A stretch of DNA of 64,000 nt, taken from the IMG/VR virus record IMGVR_UViG_3300022602_000024, positions 124,001 through 188,000 of that record, one strand, 5' to 3'. The position numbers and the translations under genes were made by a program. Each line of letters begins with the position of its first letter. Position 1 is the stretch's first letter. Under the pieces are notes generated by a model. That model was not told where the DNA came from. It made no database searches and was given only the letters and a program-made list of their open reading frames with translations. This document shows, one piece after another, positions 2,360 to 48,962 of this stretch.

Positions 2360-4312
2360 CTATTTTTTATAAAGTGCTCGTAATACCTGTTTTAACAGGT
2401 GTTGCACAGTGGGATCAGATGCAGGCAAATTGGATTTGGTTTCCATACTGTAAGCAATATCATTCCACTCTTTGTTTTCTATGGTATTCAATGATCCATT
2501 TGAATTGGCAGAGTTGATTGCTTTCAATCCTGCAATGGTAATGGGCACTATTTGATAAGTGGCAAAGCGCCCGCCTACGGTTCTGTTAATTCTCATGCCT
2601 GCTAATCCTGTTTTGGCTTTTGCAGCAAATTCTTGTTTAACAGCATCTCCAACTGCAACAGGTACGATTTTGACATCTGTTTGTTTAAGTCGACGCTCCG
2701 ACAGATAGTAGTTCAATGCAGTAGTCATTTTGCTATCAAATGCAGCCAACCCAACATTCAATACTGGACTACCTTTGGTACGCAGATAATTTACCAATGC
2801 ACTGGAATCAGCTGGATTTACTGGTCGTTGGTCTTGTGTTATTTTTGCTAATTTTGTCTTGTATTCTTGCACATAAGCAGCAGGATCACTGGCAATGATC
2901 ATGGCACGAACAAAACGTCCCACTGCATTTTTAATGCCCTGCAGGTCCGCCAAGTAGTTGCCGCCAGCATGACGGAAACTGATATACTTGCCGTTGTTGC
3001 TGATACTGGCAGTATGTGCACGGGATACATTGTTGGCAAAGTCGGCTAATTTTTTAATATCAATGGTTGTAGCCTGTGCAGGACGCCCAAACACATCAGT
3101 CTTTTTCTTTTTGACCTTGACATCATTCTCCCAGTTTCCACCTGATAAATCTCGAAACACACTACGAGCATAGTCATTGCCTTCACGACCAAAGTATTTG
3201 AGCACATACTCGTCGCCTAAGAATACTGCCAGTTTAAGTACATCTAACTTTTGTGGGATACTGACATTGATGTGTAACCCTGTACTGTCATTTGTGTATA
3301 GGCCCATTTGTTGTGCAAGGCCATAAAATCGGTTTAATGCGGTCATAGCATCCAAGGCCGGCAATGGGGGACTGACAATTTCTGCAGCAGAATCTTCTTC
3401 ATTGTCAGGCGATAAACTACCATCAGGCTCAATATACCAGTCAGTGAGGTTTTTTGCTTTCTGATGATAACTATGGAACACCTGAACTGTGCTTTCCATA
3501 GCAGTAGTCACTGCTGGTTGTAGTACTGCAGCAGCATCTTCGTAACTGCCCCCATCATCTTCATCATCGTAGTAGTCATCACTTTCATAATCAGTTAATC
3601 TCAATTGATCCCAGACTGTGGATGGATCATAGGTGAAGTATTGACTGGTATGCACATCAACCCGGCCGTTGCCAGTTAGCCAGATCAAGAAGCCTTTCCA
3701 TGAAGTGCCTGCGGCAGCCATAGAACGCATACGTACACCTAGTTGTTCTAACTCATTGTTACTGTTTTTTATGTATAGCAAATAACCAACCATTCGTGCA
3801 AATTTCAGTTGATCTGACAATTTTTTACTGGCAAAACTGAAACTGCGATCATCATCTGCGCGAATACGTTTGACAGCAAGATCGGAATATTTTTTCTGTT
3901 GTGTTGGGGTCAGTTTGTTATACAGTTCAATAACACCAGGCAAGATACCGTCTTTGAAAGCTGGATATGCTGCGGTCGCAGTATCGAATCCTTTGAGTGG
4001 TTGCTTGAATCGAAATACAGAATCAAACCACTCGGGAGTCAGATCAATATCGGCCTGGCGACCACCAATTCGTTCATCCCACACATTGTTCTGATACAAG
4101 GCGTCATCTGTTTGATCTGTGGTATAAGCGGGCTTTTCTCCAGGTTCTTCAGCAGGAGTACCTTTGACAGTAGCCTCGGGCACACATACTTCAAATTCAA
4201 ATCCAACTAACACGCCAGCGGCATGTCCTTGCTCTACTGCTTGTGCAAAGGAAGTAGGGTCCATACGGACTTCATCTAATTCGGGTTGGTGGGCAAATTC
4301 TGTAATCTTCAT
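2360..4312 (-). CDS. Putative amidoligase (COOH-NH2 ligase type 2) with capsid-targeting-like leader
   Basis: Motifs VGFEFE, WYIEPDGSL, AEIVSPP, TNDSTGLHINVS; N-terminus MKITEFA. Confidence 0.75.
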   Translation of the reverse strand: MKITEFAHQPELDEVRMDPTSFAQAVEQGHAAGVLVGFEFEVCVPEATVKGTPAEEPGEKPAYTTDQTDDALYQNNVWDERIGGRQADIDLTPEWFDSVFRFKQPLKGFDTATAAYPAFKDGILPGVIELYNKLTPTQQKKYSDLAVKRIRADDDRSFSFASKKLSDQLKFARMVGYLLYIKNSNNELEQLGVRMRSMAAAGTSWKGFLIWLTGNGRVDVHTSQYFTYDPSTVWDQLRLTDYESDDYYDDEDDGGSYEDAAAVLQPAVTTAMESTVQVFHSYHQKAKNLTDWYIEPDGSLSPDNEEDSAAEIVSPPLPALDAMTALNRFYGLAQQMGLYTNDSTGLHINVSIPQKLDVLKLAVFLGDEYVLKYFGREGNDYARSVFRDLSGGNWENDVKVKKKKTDVFGRPAQATTIDIKKLADFANNVSRAHTASISNNGKYISFRHAGGNYLADLQGIKNAVGRFVRAMIIASDPAAYVQEYKTKLAKITQDQRPVNPADSSALVNYLRTKGSPVLNVGLAAFDSKMTTALNYYLSERRLKQTDVKIVPVAVGDAVKQEFAAKAKTGLAGMRINRTVGGRFATYQIVPITIAGLKAINSANSNGSLNTIENKEWNDIAYSMETKSNLPASDPTVQHLLKQVLRALYKK

Positions 4313-4318
4313 AATATG

Positions 4319-4332
4319 TATTTATATAAATA
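4319..4332 (-). promoter_or_regulatory. T4-late-type promoter TATAAATA (palindromic, present on both strands)
   Basis: tatttatataaata 7 bp upstream of the amidoligase ATG. Confidence 0.6.
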
Positions 4333-4452: not shown

Positions 4453-6417
4453 TCATAAATTAATCTGCGGTGATTTACCAACCCAGCGTGAATCTCTAAT
4501 AATGGTTCCTACTTTAAAGTAGTTATCATCTACTTTGCGTACACCCATAGTGATCCAATTGTCATTACGGGTATCAGTAAATGCATATCCAGTACCATTG
4601 GGTTTGTCTTTAAAATATCTTAGTCCGCGATTCAACATGGCTGCACAGGCTTCCATCAATTGTTCAACCGTCATTCTGGAGCCTCTATTCAATTTGATTT
4701 GATCAAAAAAGTGCTTGGTAAACTCTAATTTAATACCCTTGGCATGGGCAAAGTGTTGTGTAGCTGTTGTCACTAGTTGTAGTTTGCGCATCAGTTCTTC
4801 GGTATAATAGGGATCAACTTCCCAGTCACTGTGTTCGTGAATCTTTTTAGCCTTGCCGGCTTTCATGTTGGCCAACCAATGTGCCATGCGTTGTTTTTCG
4901 CCTGTACTGTGTTTGGCAACATTTCTTAATGTACTTACGCTGGCTTTGGTATTAACGCCTGAACGTTTAGCAAGTCCTTTGCGTCCGGGATGTTTACCAT
5001 CAGCAAAGTTTTCTGCCACACCTTGCTTAACGAATTGAACGTTTAATTTGGCATTCTTCCACAACGGATTCTTAGGATCCATTCTTTGTTGTAGCAACCA
5101 TATAGCGGATACTCTGTGTGCCCCATCTTCAAACTTGCCGTTTAACACTATTATTGGATCGAGTTGGGCTAATGACTCTGGATGTTTTTTAAAATACTCA
5201 GCATACTCTATTGCCTTTTCAGTTACGTTCCAACTGTGGTAATCTTTAGCGTCCCAATCATCAACTACATTGTTATAGTAAGGCACACCGGGTATAGATG
5301 ATATAATCTGGCCTACAGTCATTTTGCGAGTTGTTATCTTTGCATCGGACGCAAATGGTTTAGGCTTACCAGAACTTGGTCCCGGTTGTGGGACACCATC
5401 GGCAAAGTTTTCCCATACATTTTTACCCGGCTTGTGCTTGTCCCAAAAGCCAGCACCAGCATCAGTCTGTTGACCACTGCGGCGAATTTTATATCCTTTG
5501 CTCTTTACGTAGTCATACATTGTTTTAGCAATACCTTGACTACGATAGCGTTCGTCAACTTCCAAGTCCTGTGGTAATAATTCATCACCATCAAAGGCAA
5601 ATAATACATGACCTAACTCACGACCATTACTACTTGCAGTAACATACATTACTTGGTTATCATAATCGTCATCATCAACGTATTCATCATCTTTTTGTAT
5701 TTCAATATTGATATCTATACCATTAAATGCTTCTTCTTCTAAACTTTCGCCACGATAAGGACGTACCCAAGAGAAACGTGTGCTGGCCGGAATCCACTTT
5801 AATCCTAAACCGCGATTGCCTTTGGCTGGATCAGTGTCAATCAACAACCAGTCTTTTTCATCGCTAAACTTTACTTCGTGTTGCCGACGAATAATACGCA
5901 CAATCTTGCCTGTGCTTTCAATCTTGGCCATCATGGCAGGCTCTGTGTCTTCATCTAGGAATGTGCTGGCAATCTTACGACACAGATTTTTTAACTTTTC
6001 ATTCTTTGTTTCTACTACGCGGAAACGTGCTGAACTGGTATCTTGTGTGGGATCAATGTATCCACAGTATACACGTTTAATACCTACTCCGTGTAAAAAT
6101 CGACTGCAACTTTCGTCATGGCGATCATCCATTGCTTCACTGCAAGGACTCAATGTTGTAATGACTGTAGATCCTGGGGGAACAGGACCGTTTTCACTAA
6201 CGTAAGCATTGACAGCTACACGTTCAGCGTGTATGCGCTTGCCCTCTGAATCGGGCAAGTTAATACCGCAAACTTCTACTCCGTTGGGATCTAACACACA
6301 AGCTGCTACGCAACCATATGTGTCTTCATCACGTTCTTGTCCAGAAATGACCATTTCGCATAACCTGGCCAGTATGCGATCTAAATGTTCTGTACTGAGT
6401 ATTTCTTTAGTCTGCAT
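4453..6417 (-). CDS. Modular polyprotein: Zn-dependent deaminase + small domain + GNAT + ParB-like + basic module + FTKHF C-terminal domain
   Basis: HAE..TTLSPC..C deaminase motif; RYRSQGIAKTMY GNAT motif A; PIIVLNGKFEDGAHR ParB-like; junctions VWENFADG and GVAENFADG. Confidence 0.7.
   Translation of the reverse strand: MQTKEILSTEHLDRILARLCEMVISGQERDEDTYGCVAACVLDPNGVEVCGINLPDSEGKRIHAERVAVNAYVSENGPVPPGSTVITTLSPCSEAMDDRHDESCSRFLHGVGIKRVYCGYIDPTQDTSSARFRVVETKNEKLKNLCRKIASTFLDEDTEPAMMAKIESTGKIVRIIRRQHEVKFSDEKDWLLIDTDPAKGNRGLGLKWIPASTRFSWVRPYRGESLEEEAFNGIDINIEIQKDDEYVDDDDYDNQVMYVTASSNGRELGHVLFAFDGDELLPQDLEVDERYRSQGIAKTMYDYVKSKGYKIRRSGQQTDAGAGFWDKHKPGKNVWENFADGVPQPGPSSGKPKPFASDAKITTRKMTVGQIISSIPGVPYYNNVVDDWDAKDYHSWNVTEKAIEYAEYFKKHPESLAQLDPIIVLNGKFEDGAHRVSAIWLLQQRMDPKNPLWKNAKLNVQFVKQGVAENFADGKHPGRKGLAKRSGVNTKASVSTLRNVAKHSTGEKQRMAHWLANMKAGKAKKIHEHSDWEVDPYYTEELMRKLQLVTTATQHFAHAKGIKLEFTKHFFDQIKLNRGSRMTVEQLMEACAAMLNRGLRYFKDKPNGTGYAFTDTRNDNWITMGVRKVDDNYFKVGTIIRDSRWVGKSPQINL
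5011..5025 (-). repeat. GVAE linker repeat, variant CAAGGTGTGGCAGAA
   Basis: In frame within 4453..6417; one synonymous change from the core repeat. Confidence 0.75.
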
Positions 6418-6790
6418 GCTTCAACCCAAAGTATTCAGGATTGGCTTGAGCAAAGTCACGCATGATGATGCCGGCATTGCTGTTGGCTTCGTTTTCTTCT
6501 GGGGTACCAGTTTCGCCAGCACCGTCGTACAACTTGCCCTCTAAGTCTTGCTTGTAGTGTGTGAGTTCGTGTGCTAGTGTTCTTAATACATCAACAGGAT
6601 GACGACCAGCAACCACCAGTTCAATAGACTTGGTGTTGGGATTATATCCGCCAAAACTGGTGTCTACAGGGCGTGCTAATAATTTAATAGGAGGCAATTT
6701 TTCCAGCTCTAATCGTTCGGCTACCCAAGGGGCAAACCGATGAACAAACTGCTTGGCCATGCCTTCAATTAAAAAATCACTTGCTCTCAT
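6407..6790 (-). CDS. HEXXH zincin-like metallopeptidase domain protein with leader MRASDFLIE
   Basis: LRTLAHELTHYKQ motif. Confidence 0.6.
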   Translation of the reverse strand: MRASDFLIEGMAKQFVHRFAPWVAERLELEKLPPIKLLARPVDTSFGGYNPNTKSIELVVAGRHPVDVLRTLAHELTHYKQDLEGKLYDGAGETGTPEENEANSNAGIIMRDFAQANPEYFGLKHAD

Positions 6791-7142
6791 TCAAAATCCA
6801 CGTCTGTGCCGATTCTAACAATTGTTGTAATTCTTCTACACTCTCACAATGCCATTTACGCAATGACTTGTTGATACGGCTATTTGGATCATGTGCAGTT
6901 TTTGCACTAGTACGACTCTTTTTCATGCCCTTCATACGTGCGCAGAAACTGGCACGACGTTTGGCAGCTTTTGATCCTTTTTTCAGTTTACTGGGTTTAG
7001 TAGTTACAGCAGTCTGTAGTTTGCTACCAGGATGTTCTTTACGATAACTGGCAACACCTTTTTTGTTCAGTCCGCCGTTTTTGTTCTTGCCTGATTTTTT
7101 CTGCCAGGCTGCAGTTTCTGTGACAATTTCTTCAAATTTCAT
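6777..7142 (-). CDS. Basic phage protein with leader MKFEEIVTE
   Basis: Start moved to 7142 for ATGA overlap with the dps stop; Lys/Arg-rich AAWQKKSGKN..RRASFCARM. Confidence 0.65.
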   Translation of the reverse strand: MKFEEIVTETAAWQKKSGKNKNGGLNKKGVASYRKEHPGSKLQTAVTTKPSKLKKGSKAAKRRASFCARMKGMKKSRTSAKTAHDPNSRINKSLRKWHCESVEELQQLLESAQTWILNESK

Positions 7143-7573
7143 TTTGATGTGGCCCTTAACATCCATGCGTGTTTACGGAACGCGTCCATACGTTCTGCTA
7201 AGAAGTTGCTAAATCCATGCTCGCCCTCGGCTTCGGCAATATCATATACACGCTTTAAAATCAATACCATATTCTCAGCATCTTGTAATAGTTCAGCAAC
7301 CATTTGTTCACCAGGTACAACTTCGGTAGCATCATCAATGCCGCTCAACACACTGAAGCGACTGTTACTACCAGGAGCATAACTGCCTAGGGCACGAATC
7401 TTTTCTGCAAACTCATCCACGGTACCATATACTTCAGTGTAGATGGTTTCAAACAATGCGTGTAGTTCTTGGAAGTTGATGCCTTCTACATTCCAATGAA
7501 AGAACGCAGCTTTCAAATAAAATGTAAATTGGCTAGCAAAGGCTATCTTTGCGGCTTTGGCTAATTCGTTCAT
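7139..7573 (-). CDS. dps: Dps / DNA-binding ferritin-like protein
   Basis: FHWNVEG..LHALFE..DEFAEKIR..HAWML motifs; start at 7573 by ATGA coupling. Confidence 0.9.
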   Translation of the reverse strand: MNELAKAAKIAFASQFTFYLKAAFFHWNVEGINFQELHALFETIYTEVYGTVDEFAEKIRALGSYAPGSNSRFSVLSGIDDATEVVPGEQMVAELLQDAENMVLILKRVYDIAEAEGEHGFSNFLAERMDAFRKHAWMLRATSK

Positions 7574-9687
7574 AGGTCGTATCCTGCTGCTTTCATTTCC
7601 TGTAGTCGCCATTGTATCTCAAGGCGTTCTAATCTTTGTTGTTGTGATTCGTTTAGGCCTGGTGTTCCGGGAATAGCACTTGAGCTATCGTTGGGCACAC
7701 TAGCGGCTGCTGGGTATTCGTTTAGGCTTTCGTGTGCCCATTGATCGTGCTCACTGCTCCATTGTCCTTGCCCATCCGACCATGAGTCTTCGTCGATCCC
7801 ATTTTTAAATGGCCAACCACTGGCATCTTCTTCGGCATATTGCTTGTGCACTTCACGAGCCTTCTTTTCGTCGGCATCACGGCTTTGTACTACTTTAGGC
7901 TGTGGTGCTACGGGTTCTTTTTCAAACTCTTTACGCATTTGCGACAAACTGGTATTGGGTTTCTTAGCCGCAGGCTTTGCAGTTTGGAATCCTAGTATTT
8001 CGTCAACTTGACCTTTGGTGCTATCTTCTTCAGTTTTTTTCTTTAAGAAGTTAGGAACCGTGGTATTTCGATCAAGTCTATCAACTGTGGTTTTAGTTAT
8101 GCTTGGCTTTATTTTTGTGGCAATTTTTCGATCGTTCCAATTGACGTCAGCATCCTTGGGATTCATTAATTCTATATCACGGTCGTTTTTAGATAAAGAG
8201 TTTCTATCATCTGGCCAACGTTGACCTTCCGCCACACCTTGCTGTTTACCGCGAACAAAATAATACACATCAACGTCTCTGTTGGCGGCATTTAGTTTGT
8301 TGGCGTAATCTTCTGCCTCTTGATCATTATTGAATGTTTTTACTACTTCGGTTTCGTGGTCTCTTTCGCCATTTGGATACAATGTAGTATCTTGGCGATA
8401 AACGATCCATGACATAGTAGAGCCTTCCGCCACACCTTTCTTTTTCAATGTATCAGGATGTGCTAGACCTTTTTTGACTTTTTCTGCCTGACTCATTTTA
8501 TCAACTTGTTTGCCAAGTTTGGGATCAACATCGTGCCAAGTCTGTGGATGTGGCTTTTTGTCGCCTTCCGCCACACCTTGCTTCTTCATATACTTCTTAC
8601 GCAATTTTAAGTCTGCTGGCGTTGCTTTTCTGATTAAATTCAAATATTTGTTTACTGGAATTTCTTTTATCTCAATGGGTTTGATGCCTTCTACTCCGGG
8701 AATAGAATGAAACTCTCTGCTATTGCCACCTTGAACAAACTGTGGTTTTCCATCTGGACCCTTGAATGGTAATTTATGTAGATACACATATTCACCTTTT
8801 CTAATCTGGCCACTGAACAAAACCATTTGTGGATCATTGGGGAACATACCTGTGTCTGAACCTGGTGTAGTCAGACCCATGGCTATAGCAACTTTTGGAT
8901 CTGAAGTAGCGTAGATAGCATTTTGATTACTACCAGCGGCACCACCTGTATCTACAGATTGTCTTGGTTCTAACATAGTAATCTTTTGTCTTGACCCATG
9001 CCAAAGATAGGTATTAATAACTTTGCCTTCCGCCACACCTTGCTGTCCAATTTGAAGATATTCAGTGGGCCAATCAAACACTATGTTATCGTATGCATCA
9101 AACACTGTCTCGAGGTAATCTCTTAACTCGTCAGGTATACGCTCTTTACTCCATGCTTTGGGCATTTCAGAATCATCGCCGTGCCATGCTTTCCAAGCCA
9201 TTGGGGTCCAATAGTCTAAGGCATCACTATCCAAATTGCCGGCTTTTTGCAATGCTGGAGCAACAGACTTAAACCCTTCTCTGTTGGCCCAAGTAGCAAA
9301 GATTTTGTGATAAGGCTTGTTATTTGCCACTGCCCATTGATATAGATCTCGTACATCAGTTGGTGGCATTTGTGTATCAGGAATACGTGGTTCTTTTTGC
9401 ATCCTGCCCATCATGGTATCAAATCGCTTGTCGCCAGTTGCCTCCGCCACACCCTCTGACTTGGGCTTTTTGTGATGCTTCTTCATGTTGATGGCAATAG
9501 CAGCCTGTTGTGCGGCATTGGCAGCTTCTTCTACTGACTCATTGGGCACACAGTTATTGACTCTGACACCACCTTTGATCTTGGTGCCTTCTTTGTGCTT
9601 GCCAGTCCAGCACTTGGCATCCAAGCGTTGTTTAATCGCCCGGGCTTCTTTAACAGTTAGTGCATCAACAATATCATTTAAAAGCAT
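7570..9687 (-). CDS. Modular polyprotein with five GVAE(G) linkers, including an ADP-ribosyltransferase-like module
   Basis: Linkers at 9453, 9039, 8577, 8436, 8238; module 2 has LWHGS..AIYATSD..E pattern. Confidence 0.75.
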   Translation of the reverse strand: MLLNDIVDALTVKEARAIKQRLDAKCWTGKHKEGTKIKGGVRVNNCVPNESVEEAANAAQQAAIAINMKKHHKKPKSEGVAEATGDKRFDTMMGRMQKEPRIPDTQMPPTDVRDLYQWAVANNKPYHKIFATWANREGFKSVAPALQKAGNLDSDALDYWTPMAWKAWHGDDSEMPKAWSKERIPDELRDYLETVFDAYDNIVFDWPTEYLQIGQQGVAEGKVINTYLWHGSRQKITMLEPRQSVDTGGAAGSNQNAIYATSDPKVAIAMGLTTPGSDTGMFPNDPQMVLFSGQIRKGEYVYLHKLPFKGPDGKPQFVQGGNSREFHSIPGVEGIKPIEIKEIPVNKYLNLIRKATPADLKLRKKYMKKQGVAEGDKKPHPQTWHDVDPKLGKQVDKMSQAEKVKKGLAHPDTLKKKGVAEGSTMSWIVYRQDTTLYPNGERDHETEVVKTFNNDQEAEDYANKLNAANRDVDVYYFVRGKQQGVAEGQRWPDDRNSLSKNDRDIELMNPKDADVNWNDRKIATKIKPSITKTTVDRLDRNTTVPNFLKKKTEEDSTKGQVDEILGFQTAKPAAKKPNTSLSQMRKEFEKEPVAPQPKVVQSRDADEKKAREVHKQYAEEDASGWPFKNGIDEDSWSDGQGQWSSEHDQWAHESLNEYPAAASVPNDSSSAIPGTPGLNESQQQRLERLEIQWRLQEMKAAGYDL
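8225..9453 (-). repeat. Five dispersed in-frame copies of GGTGTGGCGGA(A/G)G
   Basis: Plus-strand ccttccgccacacc at 8225, 8423, 8564, 9026 and cctccgccacacc at 9441; spacings 198, 141, 462, 414 nt. Confidence 0.9.
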
Positions 9688-10412
9688 TACTTTTGTCCTA
9701 ACTTGGCCTGTTTAATAGCATTAGCAACTTGTGTTACTTGTGCAGGATTACCGGTAGTAATCAAATCTTCGATAGACTTGCCCAACGCACCTGTGGTCTT
9801 TTTAGCAGCTTGATCCATGCCTTGTCCTGTTGCAGGATTTGCTTGTGGATTATTGGCCATTTTAACTGCACTTTGTGCGGCCTGTGAGGGACTTGTAGTC
9901 ATATTCACACCAGCGGACTTTAATTTGTTTATATTTTGTTGTGCGTTTTGCACTTCTTTGTTCATTTTGGCAGCATCAATGGGATTACCTGTTGTTCCGG
10001 TTGCTCCAGTGGGCATGATGTTTTCTTCAACATACTTTGACCACTCGTTCATTAGTTCTTCTTCTAGACTTGCATCTTCAGCACATCCGCCTACACCTTG
10101 GCCGGGTTTGGGAGTACCTTTATCGGTGCCCTTCCAGTAACCGCCAAACTTAGAACCACTGGCATGATGTTCAGCATCAGCCATTGAATCTTCTTCTACA
10201 TCTGCGTTGATGTTTTTTTCATCGGGCACTACTCTGGCTATATTGGCCAGAGATATAGCTCTATTGTCTGCAGCTTTTTGTACAATTGCTTTGGCTTGTG
10301 CAGCGGCTGCAGGGGATGGTTGGTCTATTGTGGCTGGCTTACCAAAGTTGCCTTCATTGCCTTCATCCAAACGTTTGAAGATATTTAATATATCTGCGAA
10401 ATTGTTATCCAT
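9687..10412 (-). CDS. Hypothetical low-complexity (A/Q/N-rich) protein, possible head cargo
   Basis: Coupled to both neighbours; leader MDNNFADILNIFKRLDE. Confidence 0.6.
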   Translation of the reverse strand: MDNNFADILNIFKRLDEGNEGNFGKPATIDQPSPAAAAQAKAIVQKAADNRAISLANIARVVPDEKNINADVEEDSMADAEHHASGSKFGGYWKGTDKGTPKPGQGVGGCAEDASLEEELMNEWSKYVEENIMPTGATGTTGNPIDAAKMNKEVQNAQQNINKLKSAGVNMTTSPSQAAQSAVKMANNPQANPATGQGMDQAAKKTTGALGKSIEDLITTGNPAQVTQVANAIKQAKLGQK

Positions 10413-12367
10413 TATTTTACCTTCTTAACGTTGGTTAGTCTATTGCCGTAGCCACTGAGTTTCTTTTGCAGTGCTTTACGAGTAAATGCTTCGTCGCCAA
10501 ACTCACTTACCACACTAGCAATACTGCTGGAACTAGTTGCACCTGCATCTTCTTTAACTGTTTGTTTGCTTTCACGGAATCCGCGACGCTGACTCAAAAG
10601 ATCTTCATAATCAGAATCATCTTCTTCGTGATCTGGACGTGCTACACCAGTGCCACCACATGATCTGCAACTGGTTCCTTCCCATTGGCCTTCGCCAGTG
10701 CCACGGCAATTATAACACTCGTGATCATCGTCATCCTCGTGTGAGCCTTCTGCCATGCCGCCAAATCCTGTCTTGGCTTTGTTGTACATTTTTTCAACAT
10801 TGGCATCACTAGCAGGACCAACATTTGGCGCTTGGGTCTTCTGCTGAATTTCTTGATCTTTATTGTATTTTTTACCGGAGCTAGTTGTTAGCATTTGTGA
10901 TAACTTCTTAATTAGATCAATGCCAAACTTTGCAAATAAAAATTCTGCGGCCCATTCTAATCCATTATCTACTAGGGTTTCTTTCAACTCATCTTTAGCT
11001 ACATCAGCTACTGCGCCGGCAACCCCGGCATGAGCAGCTCCTGCTACTGCTGCATGACCAGCTAGTCCCACACCTAAAGCCATAACAACAAGATCTTTCC
11101 ATTGTGCGTTCATAAATTTGATCTGTGCAGGGGTTGCTTTACCTTGTCTTTTCAAATTTAAAATTTGAAGCATTTGCCATGTTTCTTGTGCTTCATTTTG
11201 GCCTATAGTGAATAGTTTGGTTAGAAAACTAGGAACGATATTGGCAAATTTAGTTATTCCATTTAATGAGAAACCTTCTGCTACATCTTGTGGTAGTGCA
11301 TAAGTTTGTGCAAAAATATCTTTTTTAACAGCACCATAATCATTGGCACCGTGGCGAACAATGTAGTCGTTGCCTGCGGTATATTGTAAGTCTCCCCAGC
11401 TGGTATGTAGTACACCATCGTGGTCAGCTAACTTGGCTAACTTGGGAATTTTTTTGGGAGTAGCGGTACCGTCGCCGTTGTCATCATATAGTTTGGCAAA
11501 CTTAGCTGGTTCCACTGGATATTGCTCACCTTTGGGCCCAGTAATAATATGTGCCTGAGCAGAATGTTTCATCGGACCTTCTAGTGTTTTGACTGTACCT
11601 GGTTGTCCTGGTACTGTGTATTTGACAGGGGTGGCCTTTTTATAAGTTTGGAATGCGCCTTGTTTGAACCAAGCATCATTGATCGCTGGAGAATCGCCCT
11701 CCGCCACACCTTGCTTAACTGTTTTATAAGCACTCTGTAAAACAAACATATATTCTTTATCTGTGATATCCGGTAGTATACCTTCAACCGCGGTACTAAA
11801 AAAGTCATCACCTGCTATCATATTCATAGCATGTATCATACCCAATTCATCAACATTTTTTTGTTTTGCTACTTGTATAGCAATTTCCAATAGTTTTCTT
11901 AATCTACGACTTCTTTCATTATCGCCACCGTCGTTATTTGGAGGAACAAACTCATTTAAATTGCCCTCCGCCACACCTTCGGGTTCTCTAATAGCAGGAT
12001 TGTCAATCTGTTGAGCAACTGCTGTTAGGCTTTCATTGCTATTGGTAATCTTTTTGTACATCCATGCTTCAAGTGGAGTTCCTGATTTCACATGTTGATA
12101 AATCTTCTTAGCATCCTGTACAATGGCTTTTAATTCACCCAATGCCATGCCGTCTAATTGTTCGTCTTCTGACATGTCCTTATTATAATGCTTTTTAACA
12201 TCATTAGCAAATTGTTTTTTGGTGGCCTTTACTATACCGCTAAAACGCTTGTCTCCGCGCTTGTAGTTGCCGGCTTTGTCAGCCGCACTTGCATCTGCGC
12301 CTGCGGCAGTTTTGTAACGTGCTAGTGCATCGTTGCTTAATTCTGTGACAAATTCTGTAGGTTTCAT
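10412..12367 (-). CDS. Modular polyprotein with GVAEG/DVAEG/GMAEG linkers and a DnaJ-type Zn finger
   Basis: Leader MKPTEFVTE; linkers at 11977, 11710, 11287, 10759; CYNCRGTG..CRSCGGTG. Confidence 0.75.
   Translation of the reverse strand: MKPTEFVTELSNDALARYKTAAGADASAADKAGNYKRGDKRFSGIVKATKKQFANDVKKHYNKDMSEDEQLDGMALGELKAIVQDAKKIYQHVKSGTPLEAWMYKKITNSNESLTAVAQQIDNPAIREPEGVAEGNLNEFVPPNNDGGDNERSRRLRKLLEIAIQVAKQKNVDELGMIHAMNMIAGDDFFSTAVEGILPDITDKEYMFVLQSAYKTVKQGVAEGDSPAINDAWFKQGAFQTYKKATPVKYTVPGQPGTVKTLEGPMKHSAQAHIITGPKGEQYPVEPAKFAKLYDDNGDGTATPKKIPKLAKLADHDGVLHTSWGDLQYTAGNDYIVRHGANDYGAVKKDIFAQTYALPQDVAEGFSLNGITKFANIVPSFLTKLFTIGQNEAQETWQMLQILNLKRQGKATPAQIKFMNAQWKDLVVMALGVGLAGHAAVAGAAHAGVAGAVADVAKDELKETLVDNGLEWAAEFLFAKFGIDLIKKLSQMLTTSSGKKYNKDQEIQQKTQAPNVGPASDANVEKMYNKAKTGFGGMAEGSHEDDDDHECYNCRGTGEGQWEGTSCRSCGGTGVARPDHEEDDSDYEDLLSQRRGFRESKQTVKEDAGATSSSSIASVVSEFGDEAFTRKALQKKLSGYGNRLTNVKKVK
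11697..11977 (-). repeat. Two in-frame copies of GGTGTGGCGGAGGG
   Basis: Plus-strand ccctccgccacacc at 11697 and 11964, 267 nt apart. Confidence 0.9.
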
Positions 12368-12391: not shown

Positions 12392-12667
12392 TTATTCGGA
12401 TATAACAAAGTCGGTTGCGGAAGCGGCACCATTGACTTTGATGTTTCGAACAGTAATAGATCCATGTCGATTCACGTGTTCTATTCGTACTGAGTGCAGT
12501 CCAGGTTCTAAATTTACTATGATATTTTCTTGTATATAAACTTCGGGACCAGGCCAAGTAAAGTCCCGCTCAGTAAGCAAATCATCATCCACATATACTC
12601 GGTAAGTTGGATGCCCCGTACTCCAGGATGCATAAACATCTACAAGTATAGAGCATTCTTGGATCAT
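12392..12667 (-). CDS. Hypothetical beta-rich protein
   Basis: ORF track; 4-nt overlap with upstream gene. Confidence 0.6.
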   Translation of the reverse strand: MIQECSILVDVYASWSTGHPTYRVYVDDDLLTERDFTWPGPEVYIQENIIVNLEPGLHSVRIEHVNRHGSITVRNIKVNGAASATDFVISE

Positions 12668-13752
12668 TTTAAGCCTCTACCAATGCCACCTTTGATGGGT
12701 TGTTGTCCAGTTTTTGTGGGTTTGCGTCCTGTTAGTCCCAAGGCTTTCATTTCTTTGCCCAAGGTATCGCCTGTTACATCGTTTTGATCACCAGCAGTGG
12801 CCATAACATAACGAGGATCGTTTCCACCTCGAACAACACCTACCCCGCCCATTTCAGCAACACGCCCATAGCGTTCTTCACCTTCAGACGGTTTCCAAGA
12901 AAAGCGATTTTCGTGAGCCATGCGCTTTTGTACTAGTGTATTGATAATTCTGTCTAATTGGTCTTTGGGTACATGTTGTGCTACTAGTTTGGTCTTGCTG
13001 TTTCGATTCATGGGTTCGTAATACAAATCAACAAAAGCAGGATCTATAATACGTACTTCATTTAGTCCAGCGGCTTTGACAGTTTTAGGAAGTTTAACAG
13101 GTCTTGGTGCTTCAATTGGGGCAGCAGGAGCAAGTTTATCGGTCATTAGTTTTTCGGCTTCTACTGTATACTTGCCAAACAAATCTTTAATAATCGCTTG
13201 ACGTGTTTTTTCATCTGCAGCCACATACTGCGCACGCAACTCAGTACCTGATCGCATGGGTTGTCCTAGTACATCAAAATCAAATGTAGGAACAGTCATA
13301 ATATAAGCATGACGATTCATGCCTTCTGTTTCCTTCATGTTACCCGGCATCTTTTGCAAGTAAGCAGGTGTGCCGTCTTTTTTGGTAAAGGATTTGAAGC
13401 GTGGATCTTCGGCCATGTCTTTTTCGCTCACTGCAAAGATCACCACAGTATTGGCAGGATCAGCAATGCTTAAATTACCGCCAGTAATAACAGTTTCAAT
13501 TTGATATGGGCTTGTTGCTTGTATGATACGGTCAGAAGGAACCCCTGTTAGTTGCATAAAGTAAGCCTTTTCTGCAAAACTAAAGGGGCTCTTTGGGGGT
13601 TCTACTTTATTACTAGTAGCAATATAGACGTTGTTGCGTCCGTATTTTGTGGTTAGATAGTTATATACCGCGTGGTGACCTTTGTGAAAAGGCTGAAAAC
13701 GCCCAGGGTATATAACCAACAGTTGTGGTTCTGATAATTCCGTAATATACAT
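12664..13752 (-). CDS. Cytidyltransferase-like (HIGH-motif) nucleotidyltransferase with leader MYITELSE
   Basis: IYPGRFQPFHKGH motif; SPFSFAEK; RSGTELR. Confidence 0.75.
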   Translation of the reverse strand: MYITELSEPQLLVIYPGRFQPFHKGHHAVYNYLTTKYGRNNVYIATSNKVEPPKSPFSFAEKAYFMQLTGVPSDRIIQATSPYQIETVITGGNLSIADPANTVVIFAVSEKDMAEDPRFKSFTKKDGTPAYLQKMPGNMKETEGMNRHAYIMTVPTFDFDVLGQPMRSGTELRAQYVAADEKTRQAIIKDLFGKYTVEAEKLMTDKLAPAAPIEAPRPVKLPKTVKAAGLNEVRIIDPAFVDLYYEPMNRNSKTKLVAQHVPKDQLDRIINTLVQKRMAHENRFSWKPSEGEERYGRVAEMGGVGVVRGGNDPRYVMATAGDQNDVTGDTLGKEMKALGLTGRKPTKTGQQPIKGGIGRGLK

Positions 13753-15740: not shown

Positions 15741-16472
15741 TTATTTAGCAGGTGGTACTACCAACTCATGAATATTTGTTACCAAACCTGGGCTTATAAG
15801 GTTCAAAAACGTAACAATAGACAAATCATTGGCGTAGAAGTACAGACTCCACATATAACCACTGGTTGATTGTAGTGCTCTACTTAATCCCCCAGTCATT
15901 TTAACTATTTCTTTGTCGGCTGAATTAAAATAATTCCACAACTGTTGTCTTGTTTCCCCGGGATAAAATCCATCTTTGAGTATTATTTTGTATCGGTATC
16001 CATTGTCAGTTTTTTTAATAATGGCACCAGAATTTAAAATTTCAGCAATAAAAGAATCTTCGGGTCCTGCAAGACCATGAGTATATTTTTTAAACAACAC
16101 GGGTGCTTGATCTACAATCTCTACTAGATCGTCTTCGGACTCTGTGTAGATTTGAATCCATGGTTCCTCTACTCGAATACGTGTATTGATAGTACGATCC
16201 TGCTTGAGTTGACGAATATGTTCTAAAAACTCAATATCGGCAGCTTCTAGGTCACGAGTTCTGCGACCCCACCAGCCAAAATGATTCATGTCTCGGTCCC
16301 AGACCTTTCGATGTTCAATAGTGCTCTCAATATCTTTGCTGTCAATGGCACGTCCACCAGGGGCATAAACCACAAGTTTGTAAAGATACTGATTAAAGTA
16401 TTTTTTAGTAGTGTGGGCTATTTCAATCTTAGGATTGAACTGAGTCCAGAACAATATATCCATTTGAATCAA
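15741..16472 (-). CDS. Hypothetical protein
   Basis: 243-aa ORF downstream of clpA. Confidence 0.6.
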   Translation of the reverse strand: MIQMDILFWTQFNPKIEIAHTTKKYFNQYLYKLVVYAPGGRAIDSKDIESTIEHRKVWDRDMNHFGWWGRRTRDLEAADIEFLEHIRQLKQDRTINTRIRVEEPWIQIYTESEDDLVEIVDQAPVLFKKYTHGLAGPEDSFIAEILNSGAIIKKTDNGYRYKIILKDGFYPGETRQQLWNYFNSADKEIVKMTGGLSRALQSTSGYMWSLYFYANDLSIVTFLNLISPGLVTNIHELVVPPAK

Positions 16473-18717
16473 TCATAGGTGAGGTTGGTGTAAATGGTCC
16501 CAACACATTGAATTTAAATTCTTTGTCAAAATCAACTTCTATAACGGTATTTACAGGCACATTTTCAAAAAGTATTTTTTTACTAAGTGGGACTTTAATC
16601 AAATCATTGATCTTACGTCCTAGGGGTCTAGCACCCATTTTGGCATCGTATCCTACTTCTGCCAAGTGATCTACCGCAGTTTCTGTAACACGAATACGAA
16701 TAGACTTTTCGCTAAGTAATTCATTAATTTCATTAATGAATTTACCGACAATTTTCTTGATACTCATGTTATCTAGTTTGTTAAACTTGCAAATACCGTC
16801 TAAACGATTACGAAACTCAGGTCTAAAGAAGTCTTTAACAGCCTTGTCGTCTTCGTCGGTTTTTTGTAATGCAGTACTAAATCCAATAGTATTGCGTTCA
16901 TTGTCGCTGGCACCCAAGTTACTAGTAAGAATAACAATGGCATTACGAGCATCAGCTTTTTTGCCATTACTGCTGGTAATCATACCTTCGTCCATTAAGG
17001 CCAGCAGGATGTTGGTAACGTCTGGGTGTGCTTTTTCAACTTCGTCGAATAAAATAATACAGTTAGGATTCTTTTCGATATCACTAATCAACATACCGCC
17101 ACCTAAGTTGCTGTCATCGTAGCCTACATAGCCCGGGGGTGCACCGATCAGTTTTGCAACTGTATGCTTTTCTTGATATTCACTCATGTCATAGCGTAAC
17201 AGTTTCATACCCATGCCTTCAGCCAATAACTTGGCCAATTCTGTTTTACCAGTACCTGTTGGGCCTAGAAACAAATAACTACCCACAGGCTTGTCCGGAC
17301 TCTTGAGTCCGGCACGAGCAACATAGATCTTTTCCAACACAGTATCTACTACTGTGTCTTGTCCGTACAACTTGTTTTTAATTGTTTCTTCCAGTCCTAC
17401 TAAGCTCTTGGTTGATTCGTTACCAATTTGTTCCACAGGAATCTTGGTAAACTTACTGATAATGTCTACAATATTGCTCTTACGTACAGTCCATCCCATA
17501 GCATTGATTTTTAACTTGGCGGCTGCAGTATCAATCAAGTCAATGGCTTTGTCAGGCAAACGTTTGTCTGGTTGATAACGCACACTTAAATCTACTGCAG
17601 ATTCAATAGCATCGTCACTGATATTGCCACCATGAAACTCTTCAAAATACTCACGTAGTCCACGTAAGATTTCTTTGGCAGTTGCTGGAGTAGGTTCTTC
17701 TACTGTTAGTCTACAGAATCTGCGCATTAGGGCACGATCTTTTTCAAAACTTTGTGTATATTCTTCCCATGTGGTCGAAGCAATAACTTTGATTTGTCCT
17801 TTGGTCAATGCAGGTTTAATCATGTTAGCAAAGTCTACACTTGATCCACCACTGCCAGCACCTGCACCACGCATTTGATGTGCTTCGTCAATGAACAATA
17901 TACATTTGCCTTTGGTTTGTAATGCACCAATAACGTCTTTGAACTTTTCTTCAAACTCGCCACGATACTTACTACCAGCAAGCAATGATCCGATATCTAG
18001 ATTGTAAACGACATAATCACGCAGGTAACCGGGAACTTCACCATTGACAATGTTACGTGCCAGGCCTTCGGCAATGGCAGTCTTACCTACTCCAGCATCT
18101 CCTACTAGTAATACATTTGATTTATTGCGTTTAGCTAATACCTGTGCTATTTCGTCTAGTTCAAATTCACGTCCCACTACAGGGTCAATACGACCTTCAC
18201 GTGCTTGTACATTTAAGTTTTCGCAATGTTCTTTTAGTATTTCGTCGGCACGAGCACTCATAGTACCACGGCGTGGTTTGGTTTCAACATAGTAACTGTT
18301 GTAGAACTCAACTACTGAGCTACGCTCCATTCCGTATTTGACAAAGAAGTAACTAGCGTAACTATTTGTTTCTCCAGCAAGACTCAAAAAGATATCGACA
18401 ATCTGTACATGATGGCGACCGCTAAACAGGACTTGTGTAAGTGCACGATTAAACACACGTTCTAAACTGTGTGTTTTCTTTGGAACACAATCTGCTTCGT
18501 TACTGACCAAATAAGTTTGTTTATTTAAATAGTCTTCTATATCATTCAGTAACCCAACAGTATCTACACCAAATGCAGTCATCAGGTCATTAAATGGTTT
18601 AAAGGTCATTAAGCCGTGTGTGAGATGCTCTAGCGTAACATACTCATGATTATATTTTTTTGCAATGTCTGTGGCATTGGCAATAACGACTTCAATTTCG
18701 GGATTGTGTTGTATCAT
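16429..18717 (-). CDS. clpA: Clp/Hsp100 ATPase, ClpA-like
   Basis: N-domain, Walker A GDAGVGKT and GPTGTGKT, FIDEAH, LIGAPPGYVG, FRPEFRNR, GARPL; no ClpB middle domain seen. Confidence 0.9.
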   Translation of the reverse strand: MIQHNPEIEVVIANATDIAKKYNHEYVTLEHLTHGLMTFKPFNDLMTAFGVDTVGLLNDIEDYLNKQTYLVSNEADCVPKKTHSLERVFNRALTQVLFSGRHHVQIVDIFLSLAGETNSYASYFFVKYGMERSSVVEFYNSYYVETKPRRGTMSARADEILKEHCENLNVQAREGRIDPVVGREFELDEIAQVLAKRNKSNVLLVGDAGVGKTAIAEGLARNIVNGEVPGYLRDYVVYNLDIGSLLAGSKYRGEFEEKFKDVIGALQTKGKCILFIDEAHQMRGAGAGSGGSSVDFANMIKPALTKGQIKVIASTTWEEYTQSFEKDRALMRRFCRLTVEEPTPATAKEILRGLREYFEEFHGGNISDDAIESAVDLSVRYQPDKRLPDKAIDLIDTAAAKLKINAMGWTVRKSNIVDIISKFTKIPVEQIGNESTKSLVGLEETIKNKLYGQDTVVDTVLEKIYVARAGLKSPDKPVGSYLFLGPTGTGKTELAKLLAEGMGMKLLRYDMSEYQEKHTVAKLIGAPPGYVGYDDSNLGGGMLISDIEKNPNCIILFDEVEKAHPDVTNILLALMDEGMITSSNGKKADARNAIVILTSNLGASDNERNTIGFSTALQKTDEDDKAVKDFFRPEFRNRLDGICKFNKLDNMSIKKIVGKFINEINELLSEKSIRIRVTETAVDHLAEVGYDAKMGARPLGRKINDLIKVPLSKKILFENVPVNTVIEVDFDKEFKFNVLGPFTPTSPMIDSNGYIVLDSVQS

Positions 18718-45055: not shown

Positions 45056-48000
45056 TTATTGAAATGCCGTTACCTGGGGGAATTTCACGTATTCGTCATT
45101 GGCATTGGGTTCGTAGTACTTGTCTCTATTGGTAAAGAATTTGGTACTGCCATTGTTAAATGTAGTTGCGTGTTTGACAACATTTACAGCAACTTTATAC
45201 AAAGTATACTCAGGTACTGTTTGTCCAATGGTTAATATAGGGTTGTAATACAAAATGGCACCGTTATTGGTTTTGCCATTAATAACCTGCACCCGTTGAT
45301 TTACTTCAATTTGTTTTACAAATTCTAATGTTACTACATCTCCAACCAAGTTGATTTGCCATACACCGCCACGTTGATTTTCTGCATATATAATTTGAAT
45401 ATTTGGTTCTACTGCTGCCGCAAGAGGTGCAGTTTTAAATGTAATATTTTTATTATTGACCTGGTAAGAACTAGGGGATTGTATTGCTCCGTTAATCAAC
45501 ACTGTTGGAGGAGTAAGTGAATTGTTATATTCAACCTCACTCATAACAAATGTAGTAGTTCCTACTATGTTACCGTTTGTGTCAACATACCCGTCGGCAA
45601 CAAAACTGTCTTCGTTGCGATCAGCATGGAATATTTGAATATTTTTAATTGGTGTTGGTTTTGGTGGTGGAACAACAAAAGTAATGATATCTTCAGATAT
45701 GGTATATGCGCTGCTTGACTGTATTAGTCCGTTAACAAATACATTAGGAGTTTTATTCAATACGATTGGTAATCTGAAACTAACAGTATTTCCGTCGCCA
45801 GTTAAAGTAACACCTGCTTGTATATTATCTAAATATCCCGGGATTACGGTATATGAATCATATCCTTCGGAATCATATCCTTCAGTCTGGTAAGTATCAA
45901 TGTTATCGCCAATGAATCCATCATAATAGTTTACCCACCCGTCATACGGTCCAGCATTGATGAAATTTTCTTGTTGAGCAAAAATTAGTGTCTGACCGTT
46001 AGTGAAATTGGTAATACCATCTAATCCACCTGCAGCCTGTATTGTTGAAATGGTATGACCGTTAATACTAGAAAAAGGAACTCGAACTGCATAGTTTACA
46101 ACTGCAGCTATAGTTCCTACATTGGTATAAGGCAGTGCATCAAAAGTTGATTCGGCACCACCTATCCAAGTATTACCAACAAAATACTCACTATAATATT
46201 TGTCAATCTCGTATCTATCTACAGTAAATTCGATGTTGTTAAAATTAATACCAGCACGGTTTAATCTGTATGCAATCAAAGCGCCAGCACCGGGTGTTGC
46301 ATAGGCAAGAACCACTGCTTTAGTATATCCCAATGGCGGACTAAATGTTGATGTAGTAGAGCCAGGCTGGTTGCTGGTCATCCAAGGTGGTAAACTGCTT
46401 TGATCATAATATCCCACGCCATCAACCAATCGTTGAATCATATTTTCTGTGGTGTTAGGATAGATTGTATATATGTCTTGTCCGTCAGCATTGACATATG
46501 GGTTGGTAATCATTCCTTGTAAATCAATTTCAAGTGCCGGACCTTTACCGGAAGAATTTAAGTCCGGATCAATGACTTCAACATAAACAACTTCGTACTT
46601 GACCTTATAACTCTTGTCCAATACAACCGCAGTTTTTATACCGCCAAAATCATATGTTTTTGTCCAGTGGTTGTTGATGATTGATTCTTCGAATACTGTT
46701 AAGTTAGCAGAATCCAGTCCTGGTAAAAATAACATATTCATTTCAGTGTTGACACCAAACCATGGATCCAATGGTTTATAAATTAATTCTGGATCAAAAA
46801 TCTCTGTATTACTGATCACAGAATTAAAGATTTGTCGTTGTGCAGTTGACGGCATTGCTTTGAGATATACATCAACATAAGGATTCTTGTCAATGACATT
46901 TAATTTTATCATAAATGTTTTCATTGCACTAGCAGTGCCATCTGAAGTTTCTGCCAATACTGTAAATTCATATTGTTTGTCAACAGTAGTTGTACCACCA
47001 TCGAACATAGTATCGTAAGTGTCTAAATCAAACGCTTCAAACGCAACACGACCGCTGATATCACCTGAAGGTAATAGTTCTAGTCCTTGTGGTAATCTTG
47101 CTGGTACCCCTGGTGAATCCACAATACTGTAAACCAATGGTTTTCCAATGGGACTCACTGCAACAACACTCAAATCACTGACTGACCCATTGTCGATTGT
47201 TCCCAAGTCAGTTGCAGTGGTCCAGTTGATAATGTTGTTGACATCACCTAGGATTGGCAAACTGAAGAATTTGGGTGTGCTGGAATAAGTTACATTGCTG
47301 TAGGTTATGGTACCGCTGATATTGCTGGCAGTATTTACAGTCTTGCTGACCACTATGGCAAGATTGAATTCCTGTAGTGCCGCAATCTGCGAATTAACAT
47401 GCCCGTACAACCAACCAGTCTGTTCGTCTAACTGTAGACCTGGCAAGCCAATGTTGCTTGATACATTGCCCTGTATATAACTGTCAAACGGAATGTTGTC
47501 AAATCCGATATCATAGACCGGAATGTATGCGTCAAAGGTACCAGCAGTATCCACAATAGAATATTTTAATCCCACATTTCCACTAAAGTCGGTGCCGACA
47601 AATTGATACGCATAATAACTCAACTGGCGACCTTGTGGGAGACTAGTAACGGTATTCAACAACACTGGGGGAGTAACATTCAGTGTGTCAATGGTTAAGA
47701 AAGTATCGTCGGTGGTATCAAGTTGGCTATCAGCAGTAAATCCACTGCGTGCCACAACATTAATAAAATACGTTTGTGTGTCGTAGTTGGCACCATCGAA
47801 TGCCTGTACTGTAAAACTGTAACCAACACTTTGATTCAACTGTGTAAAATCATAAGGACCATAATCATACTCTTGCTGACTCATAGTATTGTAAACTGTG
47901 CCAGTGAGAGTAGTGGGAGTATTTAAGTTTTGTAACGGAGTAACTGTCCATACATTGTTGTTGACCTTGCCCACAATCTGTGTTCCGGGTGCAACTCCGC

Positions 48001-48961: not shown

Positions 48962-48962
48962 T

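Follow-up and report, generated by a model that had tools for sequence, protein, structure and literature searches.

Why should a single phage gene string together a deaminase, a GNAT acetyltransferase, a ParB-like domain and a putative ribonuclease (RNase), and why should its units be joined at junctions that end in glutamate? These questions are raised by an open reading frame (ORF) of 654 amino acids (aa) on the minus strand of a stretch of viral DNA of 64,000 nucleotides (nt), hereafter the window, which corresponds to positions 124001-188000 of the IMG/VR virus record IMGVR_UViG_3300022602_000024. The answer that we favour, and which we regard as somewhat better than an even bet, is that this ORF encodes an effector polyprotein that would be packaged into the capsid, cut at its module borders by a gp21-type protease and injected in pieces.

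The source genome is a virus record of 354,429 bp, estimated to be 98% complete and with a GC content of about 40%. It encodes a gp23-family capsid protein (PF07068, 328 bits) and a gp21-family prohead protease (Peptidase_S77, PF03420, 89 bits against a cut-off of 27; positions 16741-17379 of the whole genome), and its head genes stand in the order protease, coiled-coil scaffold, capsid. With its counterparts in Vibrio phage 2.275.O, PA5oct, GAP32, CBB and Serratia BF the capsid protein shares 65-70% identity. These are phages of the Rak2/121Q/GAP32 clade (10.1101/406421), and the phage under study is an uncultured T4-like jumbo phage of that Rak2/GAP32 clade. The ORF and its parts are as follows, in window coordinates and with the modules labelled M1 to M6 from the N-terminus:

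4453..6417 (-): whole polyprotein ORF, 654 aa, from ATG to stop without breaks; stop codon at 4453-4455
6388..6417 (-): N-terminal decapeptide MQTKEILSTE, a possible leader resembling the capsid targeting sequence (CTS) of T4
5950..6387 (-): M1, residues 11-156, zinc deaminase of the cytidine deaminase (CDA) fold, ending in FLDE156
5734..5949 (-): M2, residues 157-228, five-strand beta domain of 72 aa, ending in SLEE228
5410..5733 (-): M3, residues 229-336, short GNAT acetyltransferase, ending in VWE336
5395..5409 (-): NFADG stub, residues 337-341, corresponding to the opening five residues of an M5 module and placed before M4
5011..5394 (-): M4, residues 342-469, ParB/sulfiredoxin-like domain, ending in QGVAE469
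5011..5022 (-): junction codons GGT GTG GCA GAA (G466-V-A-E469), a one-base variant of the family-wide GGTGTGGCGGAA
4834..5010 (-): M5, residues 470-528, basic helical domain of 59 aa (NFADGK...HWLANMKAGKAKK), ending in IHE528
4456..4833 (-): M6, residues 529-654, RelE/ParE/RegB-like domain

A word-indexed search of metagenomic proteins returned 1,726 relatives of the ORF at E<=0.001, the first 120 of which underlie the module counts that follow. Module borders were drawn from the ends of BLAST high-scoring segment pairs (HSPs) against these 120 relatives and from the predicted local distance difference test (pLDDT) of AlphaFold2 models, residues 1-528 and M6 being modelled separately. The HSP ends cluster at residues 156-161, 222-231, 336-341, 464-470 and 524-525, and in the model of residues 1-528 the pLDDT drops below 50 at 156-160, 219-226, 330-350, 467-475 and 522-528; the domains of this model are well folded, its linkers are disordered and its predicted template-modelling score (pTM) is 0.37. 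Narrow piles of HSP ends, low linker pLDDT and a pTM of 0.37 together argue for a beads-on-a-string build, in which the ORF is, according to the model, a chain of six independently folding modules, a number within the two to 15 conflict-type domains per polypeptide that characterize polyvalent proteins. An initial annotation of this DNA had proposed the fusion of deaminase, GNAT, ParB-like and RNase-like modules in one gene, naming a single integrated enzyme or catalytically dead modules as the outcomes that would speak against it. All four modules are indeed present with their catalytic or signature residues retained, and they fold as separate bodies joined by disordered linkers; its count of modules fell short by two, at residues 157-228 and 470-528.

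The linkers provide the first part of the answer. All five disordered segments hold an [ILV]xE motif (FLDE156, SLEE228, VWE336, VAE469 and IHE528), and with 11 such motifs in the 654 residues the probability of finding one in every linker by chance is about 2e-4. The same regularity is observed throughout the family, whose junctions were identified from where the next module begins, independently of the motif itself: before M5 the P1 residue is Glu at 114 of 114 junctions and P3 is V, L, I or M at 109 of the 114, while P2 is free (A, D, E, W, K, N, Q), and before M4 the corresponding figures are 69/73 for Glu at P1 and 70/73 for V, M, I or L at P3, P2 again being free. Modules that occur by themselves respect the same borders: stand-alone M6 proteins of about 135 aa begin with MKxxExxxE followed by HSDW, so that the leader stops where KKIHE stops in the polyprotein, and in locus L018 a separate deaminase gene of 226 aa consists of leader, M1 and M5.

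This rule resembles that of a known protease, since gp21 of phage T4 cleaves after L/I-x-E (PMC9026906). In the capsid protein encoded by the present genome the motif L40-x-E42 (LAE, then N) stands just before the conserved core, with both residues invariant in comparison with the Vibrio phage homologue, and T4 gp23 reads LTE65, then A, in the same region. The scaffold protein contains six [ILV]AE in 372 aa; this density is 13 times the mean of the proteome and ranks second among 272 ORFs. The initial annotation had seen that the junctions end in Glu; what it had missed is their agreement with the L/I-x-E specificity of the T4-type prohead protease encoded in the same genome. It had likewise overlooked three further features that are described below, namely the CTS-like N-terminal leaders, the massive shuffling of modules among relatives and the conservation of the junctions at the nucleotide level.

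What the modules are can be said with varying firmness. M1 carries the zinc signature H63 A64 E65, P91 C92 and C104, invariant in 33 relatives; of the HAE/PCxxxC motif previously proposed, the HAE and the PC stand and the spacing does not, the second zinc-binding Cys being C104 in an arrangement (PC-x11-C) whose 11-residue spacing is unusual. Its match to Pfam dCMP_cyt_deam_1 (PF00383) reaches 38.8 bits against a cut-off of 25 (E 9e-10), and its Foldseek neighbours are RibD/RibG, TadA and dCMP deaminases (E 4e-7 to 4e-4); a sequence search of M1 against the PDB gave nothing meaningful. M2, whose strands are visible in the AlphaFold2 model, is an exchangeable unit present in 13 of the 120 relatives at 67-97% identity, and a Pfam scan of it returned no family. 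In M3, which is found in 55 relatives and is modelled as a beta sheet plus helices, the suspected acetyl-CoA motif RSQGIA is present as GNAT motif A (R292-S-Q-G295-I-A297); Acetyltransf_1 (PF00583) is matched with 22.9 bits by the isolated module and 20.4 bits by the whole ORF, the cut-off being 20.7, so that the match lies above it for the isolated module, and PF13508 is matched as well.

M4 is like ParB and sulfiredoxin (Srx), an assignment made by fold only: the structural neighbours of the model are GmrSD_N, DndB and ParB_N, with template-modelling (TM) scores of 0.48-0.58, while a search of the M4 profile against the PDB and a Pfam scan of 36 M4 relatives yielded no family and no PF02195 match, and a sequence search of M3 and M4 together against the PDB gave nothing meaningful. 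The ParB-like DGAHR noted earlier lies at D431-G-A-H-R435 and is invariant in the alignment of the 36 relatives. The stub in front of M4 is unique to this protein, and 35 relatives read E-[GNDSA]-[VIF]PQPG at the same place. Its DNA repeats that of the M5 start, as had been reported for the ENFADG segment, with 17 of 18 bases identical between 5395-5412 and 4996-5013; the stub was likely left behind when an M5 module was lost by in-frame deletion or by recombination. As a separate observation, there is a low-complexity ORF of 241 aa at 9687-10412 (-) whose start, MDNNFAD.., recalls the NFADG with which M5 begins.

M5 was found in viruses only. It occurs in 101 copies in the 120 relatives, almost always as the final module, and its fusion partners in Atlas clusters are NUDIX, GNAT, NT5C, Pterin_4a, Sod_Cu and ART-PolyVal; it matched no Pfam family, and its profile found no meaningful match in the PDB. 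The notion of M5 as a universal C-terminal tail was rejected, as ORFs chosen solely by the 17-base junction sequence described below never end in M5, and for the same reason its frequency among the first 120 hits is owed in part to how these were selected.

The last module had been guessed to be an RNase of the BECR fold. From HMMER we obtained 24 cluster representatives of M6, 22 of which were aligned: H569 and R578, which belong to the LEFTKHFFDQ..R segment pointed out previously, are invariant in all 22, position 638 is Thr or Ser in all 22 (T638 in the present protein), and D615 is kept in at least 90% of relatives. The AlphaFold2 model (pLDDT 94) shows, in module numbering, a strand (35-38), two helices (40-46 and 56-74) and four strands (82-87, 94-102, 105-113 and 123-125); the invariant residues become H41 and R50 and the Thr/Ser position becomes 110, so that the His opens the first core helix and the Thr/Ser lies in the third of the four C-terminal strands. 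An exhaustive VIA-align comparison with 48,161 PDB chains placed RelE, ParE and T4 RegB on top with Z 5.2-6.0, although with this program a Z below 8 may reflect merely a common arrangement. AlphaFold DB matches include DUF4258 and RelE models; Foldseek against the PDB gave only E >0.06, and a Pfam scan of the 22 members returned no family.

Phage BECR domains have been described as consisting of an N-terminal helix that bears His (or Arg) and, after it, four to five strands, with S/T in strand 4 (PMC5512222). Since topology, invariant His and late-strand Thr/Ser of M6 match that description, the module probably has a BECR-like fold, as judged from the model, and its RNase activity is putative; of the original guess, the fold is thus moderately supported by Z and by the conserved His and Thr/Ser, with no match at the level of sequence profiles. 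M6 shares with RelE/ParE, T4 RegB, PBECR and DUF4258 the beta-alpha-alpha-beta-beta-beta core, the early His and the late Thr/Ser, and it occurs as the C-terminal module of phage multidomain proteins; it differs from them in having an extra N-terminal helix, no profile match and a structural Z of just 5-6.

Shuffling of these modules is extensive. In the relatives they recur in many orders, in company with NUDIX, nucleotidyltransferase, HD/RelA-SpoT, chitinase/LysM, cytidylyltransferase, DUF6647 metallopeptidase and DUF6321 domains, and identities within single relatives are mosaic (M1 46%, M3 95% and M5 93% in P0012; M1 94%, M2 97%, M3 52% and M5 45% in P0003; M1 45% and M4 92% in P0006). The commonest junction is QGVAE(G), and GVAE[GN] occurs nowhere in the genome beyond the 654-aa ORF and its neighbours of 705 and 651 aa.

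The uniformity of the junction extends to its DNA. The sequence GGTGTGGCGGA occurs seven times in the genome, each time in frame in a polyprotein ORF, and in 94 junction contexts, from loci fetched by protein similarity and thinned to <50% flank identity, Gly is encoded by GGT in 95% (background 44%), Val by GTG in 81% (19%) and Ala by GCG in 79% (7.5%). The 17-mer CAAGGTGTGGCGGAAGG matches at least 120 IMG/VR stretches, and among the matches listed for it ORFs reach 1,570 aa with seven junctions. Rare codons are kept across the 94 contexts. Such uniformity is not explained by protein-level selection alone, and in the explanation that we prefer the 17-mer would be a homology joint for swapping modules between polyproteins and between phages, kept uniform by that exchange; alternatives are a translational pause at domain borders, caused by rare codons or by likeness to a Shine-Dalgarno (SD) sequence, and an RNA signal. 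The idea that ribosomes bind internally at the junction and initiate downstream of it was rejected, as no consistent in-frame start codon follows it. More tentatively, and with doubts that outweigh our confidence, one may conceive of a cassette system in which the 17-base joint would be both head-protease site and crossover point for injected proteins; any module placed between two joints would then be automatically co-packaged, freed and delivered, making the system a protein-level analogue of the integron for capsid cargo.

A route into the capsid is suggested by the N-termini. T4 uses a CTS of 10 N-terminal residues, MKTYQEFIAE, which closes with the L/I-x-E motif, to load its internal proteins into the scaffolding core, after which it is removed (PMC8442874). 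In most relatives of the present ORF the N-terminus reads MRAxEF[IV]xE (for example MRAKEFIIE) or M[YH]LFDLFE[DG], and P0003 and P0005 retain the leader MQTKEILSTE. CTS-like starts are carried by 29/51 ORFs picked solely by the 17-mer versus 117/625 control ORFs. Four ORFs of the cluster start in this manner, with MKITEF.., MRASDFLIE, MKFEEIVTE and MKPTEFVTE, the last three of which fit the leader rule, as do the starts of most relatives; just two other ORFs of the 354-kb genome match the pattern, one of them with MKITEIIAEA. The neighbouring ORFs are the following:

2360..4312 (-): amidoligase-domain protein of 650 aa (PF12224, E 8e-7), starting MKITEF
6407..6790 (-): zincin-like metallopeptidase of 127 aa with the motif HELTH, starting MRASDFLIE
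6777..7142 (-): DUF6321 basic protein (PF19846, E 1.5e-17), starting MKFEEIVTE
7570..9687 (-): polyprotein of 705 aa with five GVAE junctions, whose Glu codons start at 9442, 9028, 8566, 8425 and 8227
10412..12367 (-): polyprotein of 651 aa starting MKPTEFVTE, with two GVAE junctions and one DVAE junction, whose Glu codons start at 11966, 11699 and 11276

We infer packaging, cleavage and injection in the following order. The polyprotein would be made late in infection and taken up into the scaffolding core of the prohead through its T4-CTS-like leader, through the basic M5 or through both. The gp21-type prohead serine protease would then cut after Glu at exposed [V/I/L]-x-E sites, that is, after E156, E228, E336, E469 and E528, and the freed deaminase, M2, GNAT, ParB-like domain, basic M5 and BECR-like RNase would remain in the head with the DNA. 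On infection the modules would enter the host with the genome, where they could immediately target its nucleotides, nucleic acids or proteins; they are plausible candidates for effectors of host takeover or anti-defence.

Several observations weigh against this account. Six other [ILV]xE motifs lie inside folded domains, where accessibility must explain that they are not cut, and the decapeptide MQTKEILSTE fits the leader rule weakly, its P3 being Ser and not hydrophobic. The polyprotein cluster does not stand among virion or late genes, its distance from the head genes being about 110 kb. The deaminase, NUDIX, cytidylyltransferase and NT5C modules of the family could equally be cytoplasmic enzymes of nucleotide metabolism. 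Finally, a tblastn search of 50,697 cultured phage records found none that holds any part of the 654-aa protein, and Vibrio phage 2.275.O (MG592671.1, 349 kb), the nearest cultured phage by capsid (70%), is without M5, so that the polyprotein repertoire appears to be confined to an uncultured sub-branch. A megablast of 12 kb against the same 50,697 records gave no match, and a PHROGs search returned nothing for the ORF.

Three other explanations have to be weighed, and all three are weakened because the strict rule of Glu at P1, a hydrophobic residue at P3 and a free P2 is found in the capsid and scaffold proteins too. The one that survives best, improbable as we consider it, is that of an uncleaved multidomain enzyme or effector, packaged or not, in which the QGVAE-type junction is a flexible linker that has spread as a recombination joint. 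Some polyvalent proteins, such as the virion RNA polymerase (vRNAP) of phage N4, are packaged unprocessed (PMC5512222), and the nucleotide conservation of the junctions does exceed what the protein needs. A DNA joint is nevertheless insufficient as an explanation, because junctions as dissimilar as VWE, VTE, VSE, MNE, IEE, LDE and IHE still retain the P1 Glu and the hydrophobic P3; moreover, identical module starts directly follow a cleavable-looking leader in stand-alone genes.

It seems quite unlikely that the protein is a polyvalent protein processed, be it before packaging, in the head or after injection, by the adjacent zincin-like metallopeptidase (MPTase), even though the ORF of this peptidase overlaps the start of the 654-aa ORF, the domain is fused into many relatives, in frame with the same modules in P0002, P0050 and an ORF of L005, and Iyer et al. 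propose just such a processing role for MPTase domains (PMC5512222). The junction rule is the one known for prohead serine proteases of the T4 type, and it recurs in the capsid and scaffold proteins of this phage, neither of which is an MPTase substrate; in many family members that have junctions the same polypeptide lacks an MPTase module, and the Pfam matches of the peptidase (DUF6647, Peptidase_M91 and DUF6782) are weak and below their cut-offs. Little probability, lastly, attaches to cytoplasmic nucleotide or nucleic-acid enzymes fused for co-expression and never packaged, with the N-terminal peptide as a translation-initiation or stability feature: the repertoire of deaminase, NUDIX, cytidylyltransferase, NT5C and HD/RelA-SpoT and the distance of the cluster from the head genes would suit it, but it leaves the strict Glu-P1/hydrophobic-P3 borders and the T4-CTS-like N-termini unexplained, and injected conflict effectors typically include modules such as ParB-like nuclease, BECR-like RNase, ART-PolyVal and metallopeptidase (PMC5512222).

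The packaged and processed polyprotein that we favour has counterparts in two known systems. With the T4 internal proteins IPI, IPII, IPIII and Alt it shares the head kit (gp21-family protease, scaffold and gp23-family capsid), short N-terminal leaders that resemble MKTYQEFIAE, cuts that are here predicted after hydrophobic-x-Glu, and a cargo of fast-evolving anti-host proteins, a likeness that is proposed for the cargo here. The T4 proteins are single-domain and cut once (Alt at both ends), whereas here a chain can comprise up to seven or more unrelated enzyme modules, each border has a cleavage-type site and the junction is conserved also as DNA; the cargo families (deaminase, GNAT, ParB-like and BECR-like) are different, and packaging is here a prediction.

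Polyvalent proteins (Iyer, Burroughs, Anand, de Souza and Aravind 2017, PMC5512222) likewise carry many conflict-type domains per polypeptide of a mobile element, and they share with the present family extreme mosaicism, a predicted co-delivery with DNA and part of their vocabulary, namely GNAT, ParB-like and BECR-like RNase domains (the last two assigned here by fold), the zincin MPTase, which lies in the adjacent ORF and in fusions among relatives, and ART-PolyVal, which is fused to M5 in relatives. For them an autoproteolysis by MPTase is proposed, and neither head-protease sites at borders nor CTS-like leaders nor a conserved junction are described (PMC5512222). Deaminase, M2 and M5 are not included in their vocabulary: deaminases are not listed by Iyer et al. 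(PMC5512222), and M2, M5 and M6 match no Pfam family, the LPD and PBECR families included. A survey of jumbo phages by the same group makes no mention of CTS or prohead protease, and full-text literature searches found no description of polyproteins with head-protease sites in this clade. The ORF would therefore be a novel variant of polyvalent proteins and T4 internal proteins.

A more distant parallel is offered by the inner-body and ejection proteins of phiKZ and SPN3US, which are giant phages too and whose gp175/gp245 proteases, related to gp21, cut many head-internal proteins after Glu before these are ejected into the host; these proteins are unrelated to the present ones, and the cuts remove propeptides and do not separate strings of enzymes. 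Their cleavage motif is S/A/G-x-E, unlike L/I-x-E. Closer to the phage at hand is phAPEC6, which we take to be a member of the same clade. The head of phAPEC6 contains a proteinaceous inner body (PMC7247149).

If the favoured account is true, a large uncultured branch of Rak2/GAP32-like phages delivers, at the moment of infection, a combinatorial arsenal of deaminase, acetyltransferase, ParB-like nuclease, RNase, NUDIX, ADP-ribosyltransferase and peptidase modules, which would be interchangeable and whose borders would serve both as protease sites and as recombination joints. The T4 paradigm of CTS and internal proteins, which concerns single proteins, would thereby come to include programmable polyproteins; injected effectors could be found in metagenomes by a simple rule, namely a leader followed by [VIL]-x-E borders, and natural design rules would become available for loading multi-protein cargo into T4-type capsids; the three unannotated domains M2, M5 and M6 would be highlighted for study.

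The surroundings of the ORF call for some further remarks. Between the DUF6321 gene and the 705-aa polyprotein, at 7139-7612 (-), a Dps/ferritin-like ORF has the top [ILV]AE density of the genome (three in 157 aa), and such an ORF stands beside polyproteins again in the related contig L005 (11039-11476). The DUF6321 tail is also the C-terminus of a basic protein of 495 aa encoded directly after terminase gp16 in T4-like cyanophages, Synechococcus phage S-SM1 being an example (L085:2286-3773), and it is present in 451 cultured phage records, mostly of cyanophages and pelagiphages. A cytidylyltransferase-like ORF at 12664-13752 (-) starts MYITELSE; since its homologue in L005 (5395-6651) bears three xVAE|N junctions, the cluster probably extends to 13752. 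At 4319-4326 (-), 7 nt upstream of the ATG of the amidoligase ORF, stands the T4 late-promoter consensus TATAAATA. It is the sole late-promoter-like sequence here and is not significant; in the window as a whole the consensus is not enriched (four found, five expected).

Farther away, an ORF of 762 aa at 16429-18717 (-) resembles AAA+ ATP-dependent proteases (phrog_4871, E 1e-238), an unusual accessory gene for a phage and an additional candidate protease in this genome. Two very large ORFs, of 1,301 and 788 aa, occupy 45056-51329 (-), the shorter one having a tail-fibre-like C-terminus (phrog_19602). Outside the window, at positions 344007-344417 (-) and 259841-260275 (-) of the whole genome, two small ORFs start with MKITEIIAEAKK and MRIKEIIFES, respectively, the starts closest to the T4 CTS, and these ORFs are candidates for classical internal proteins.

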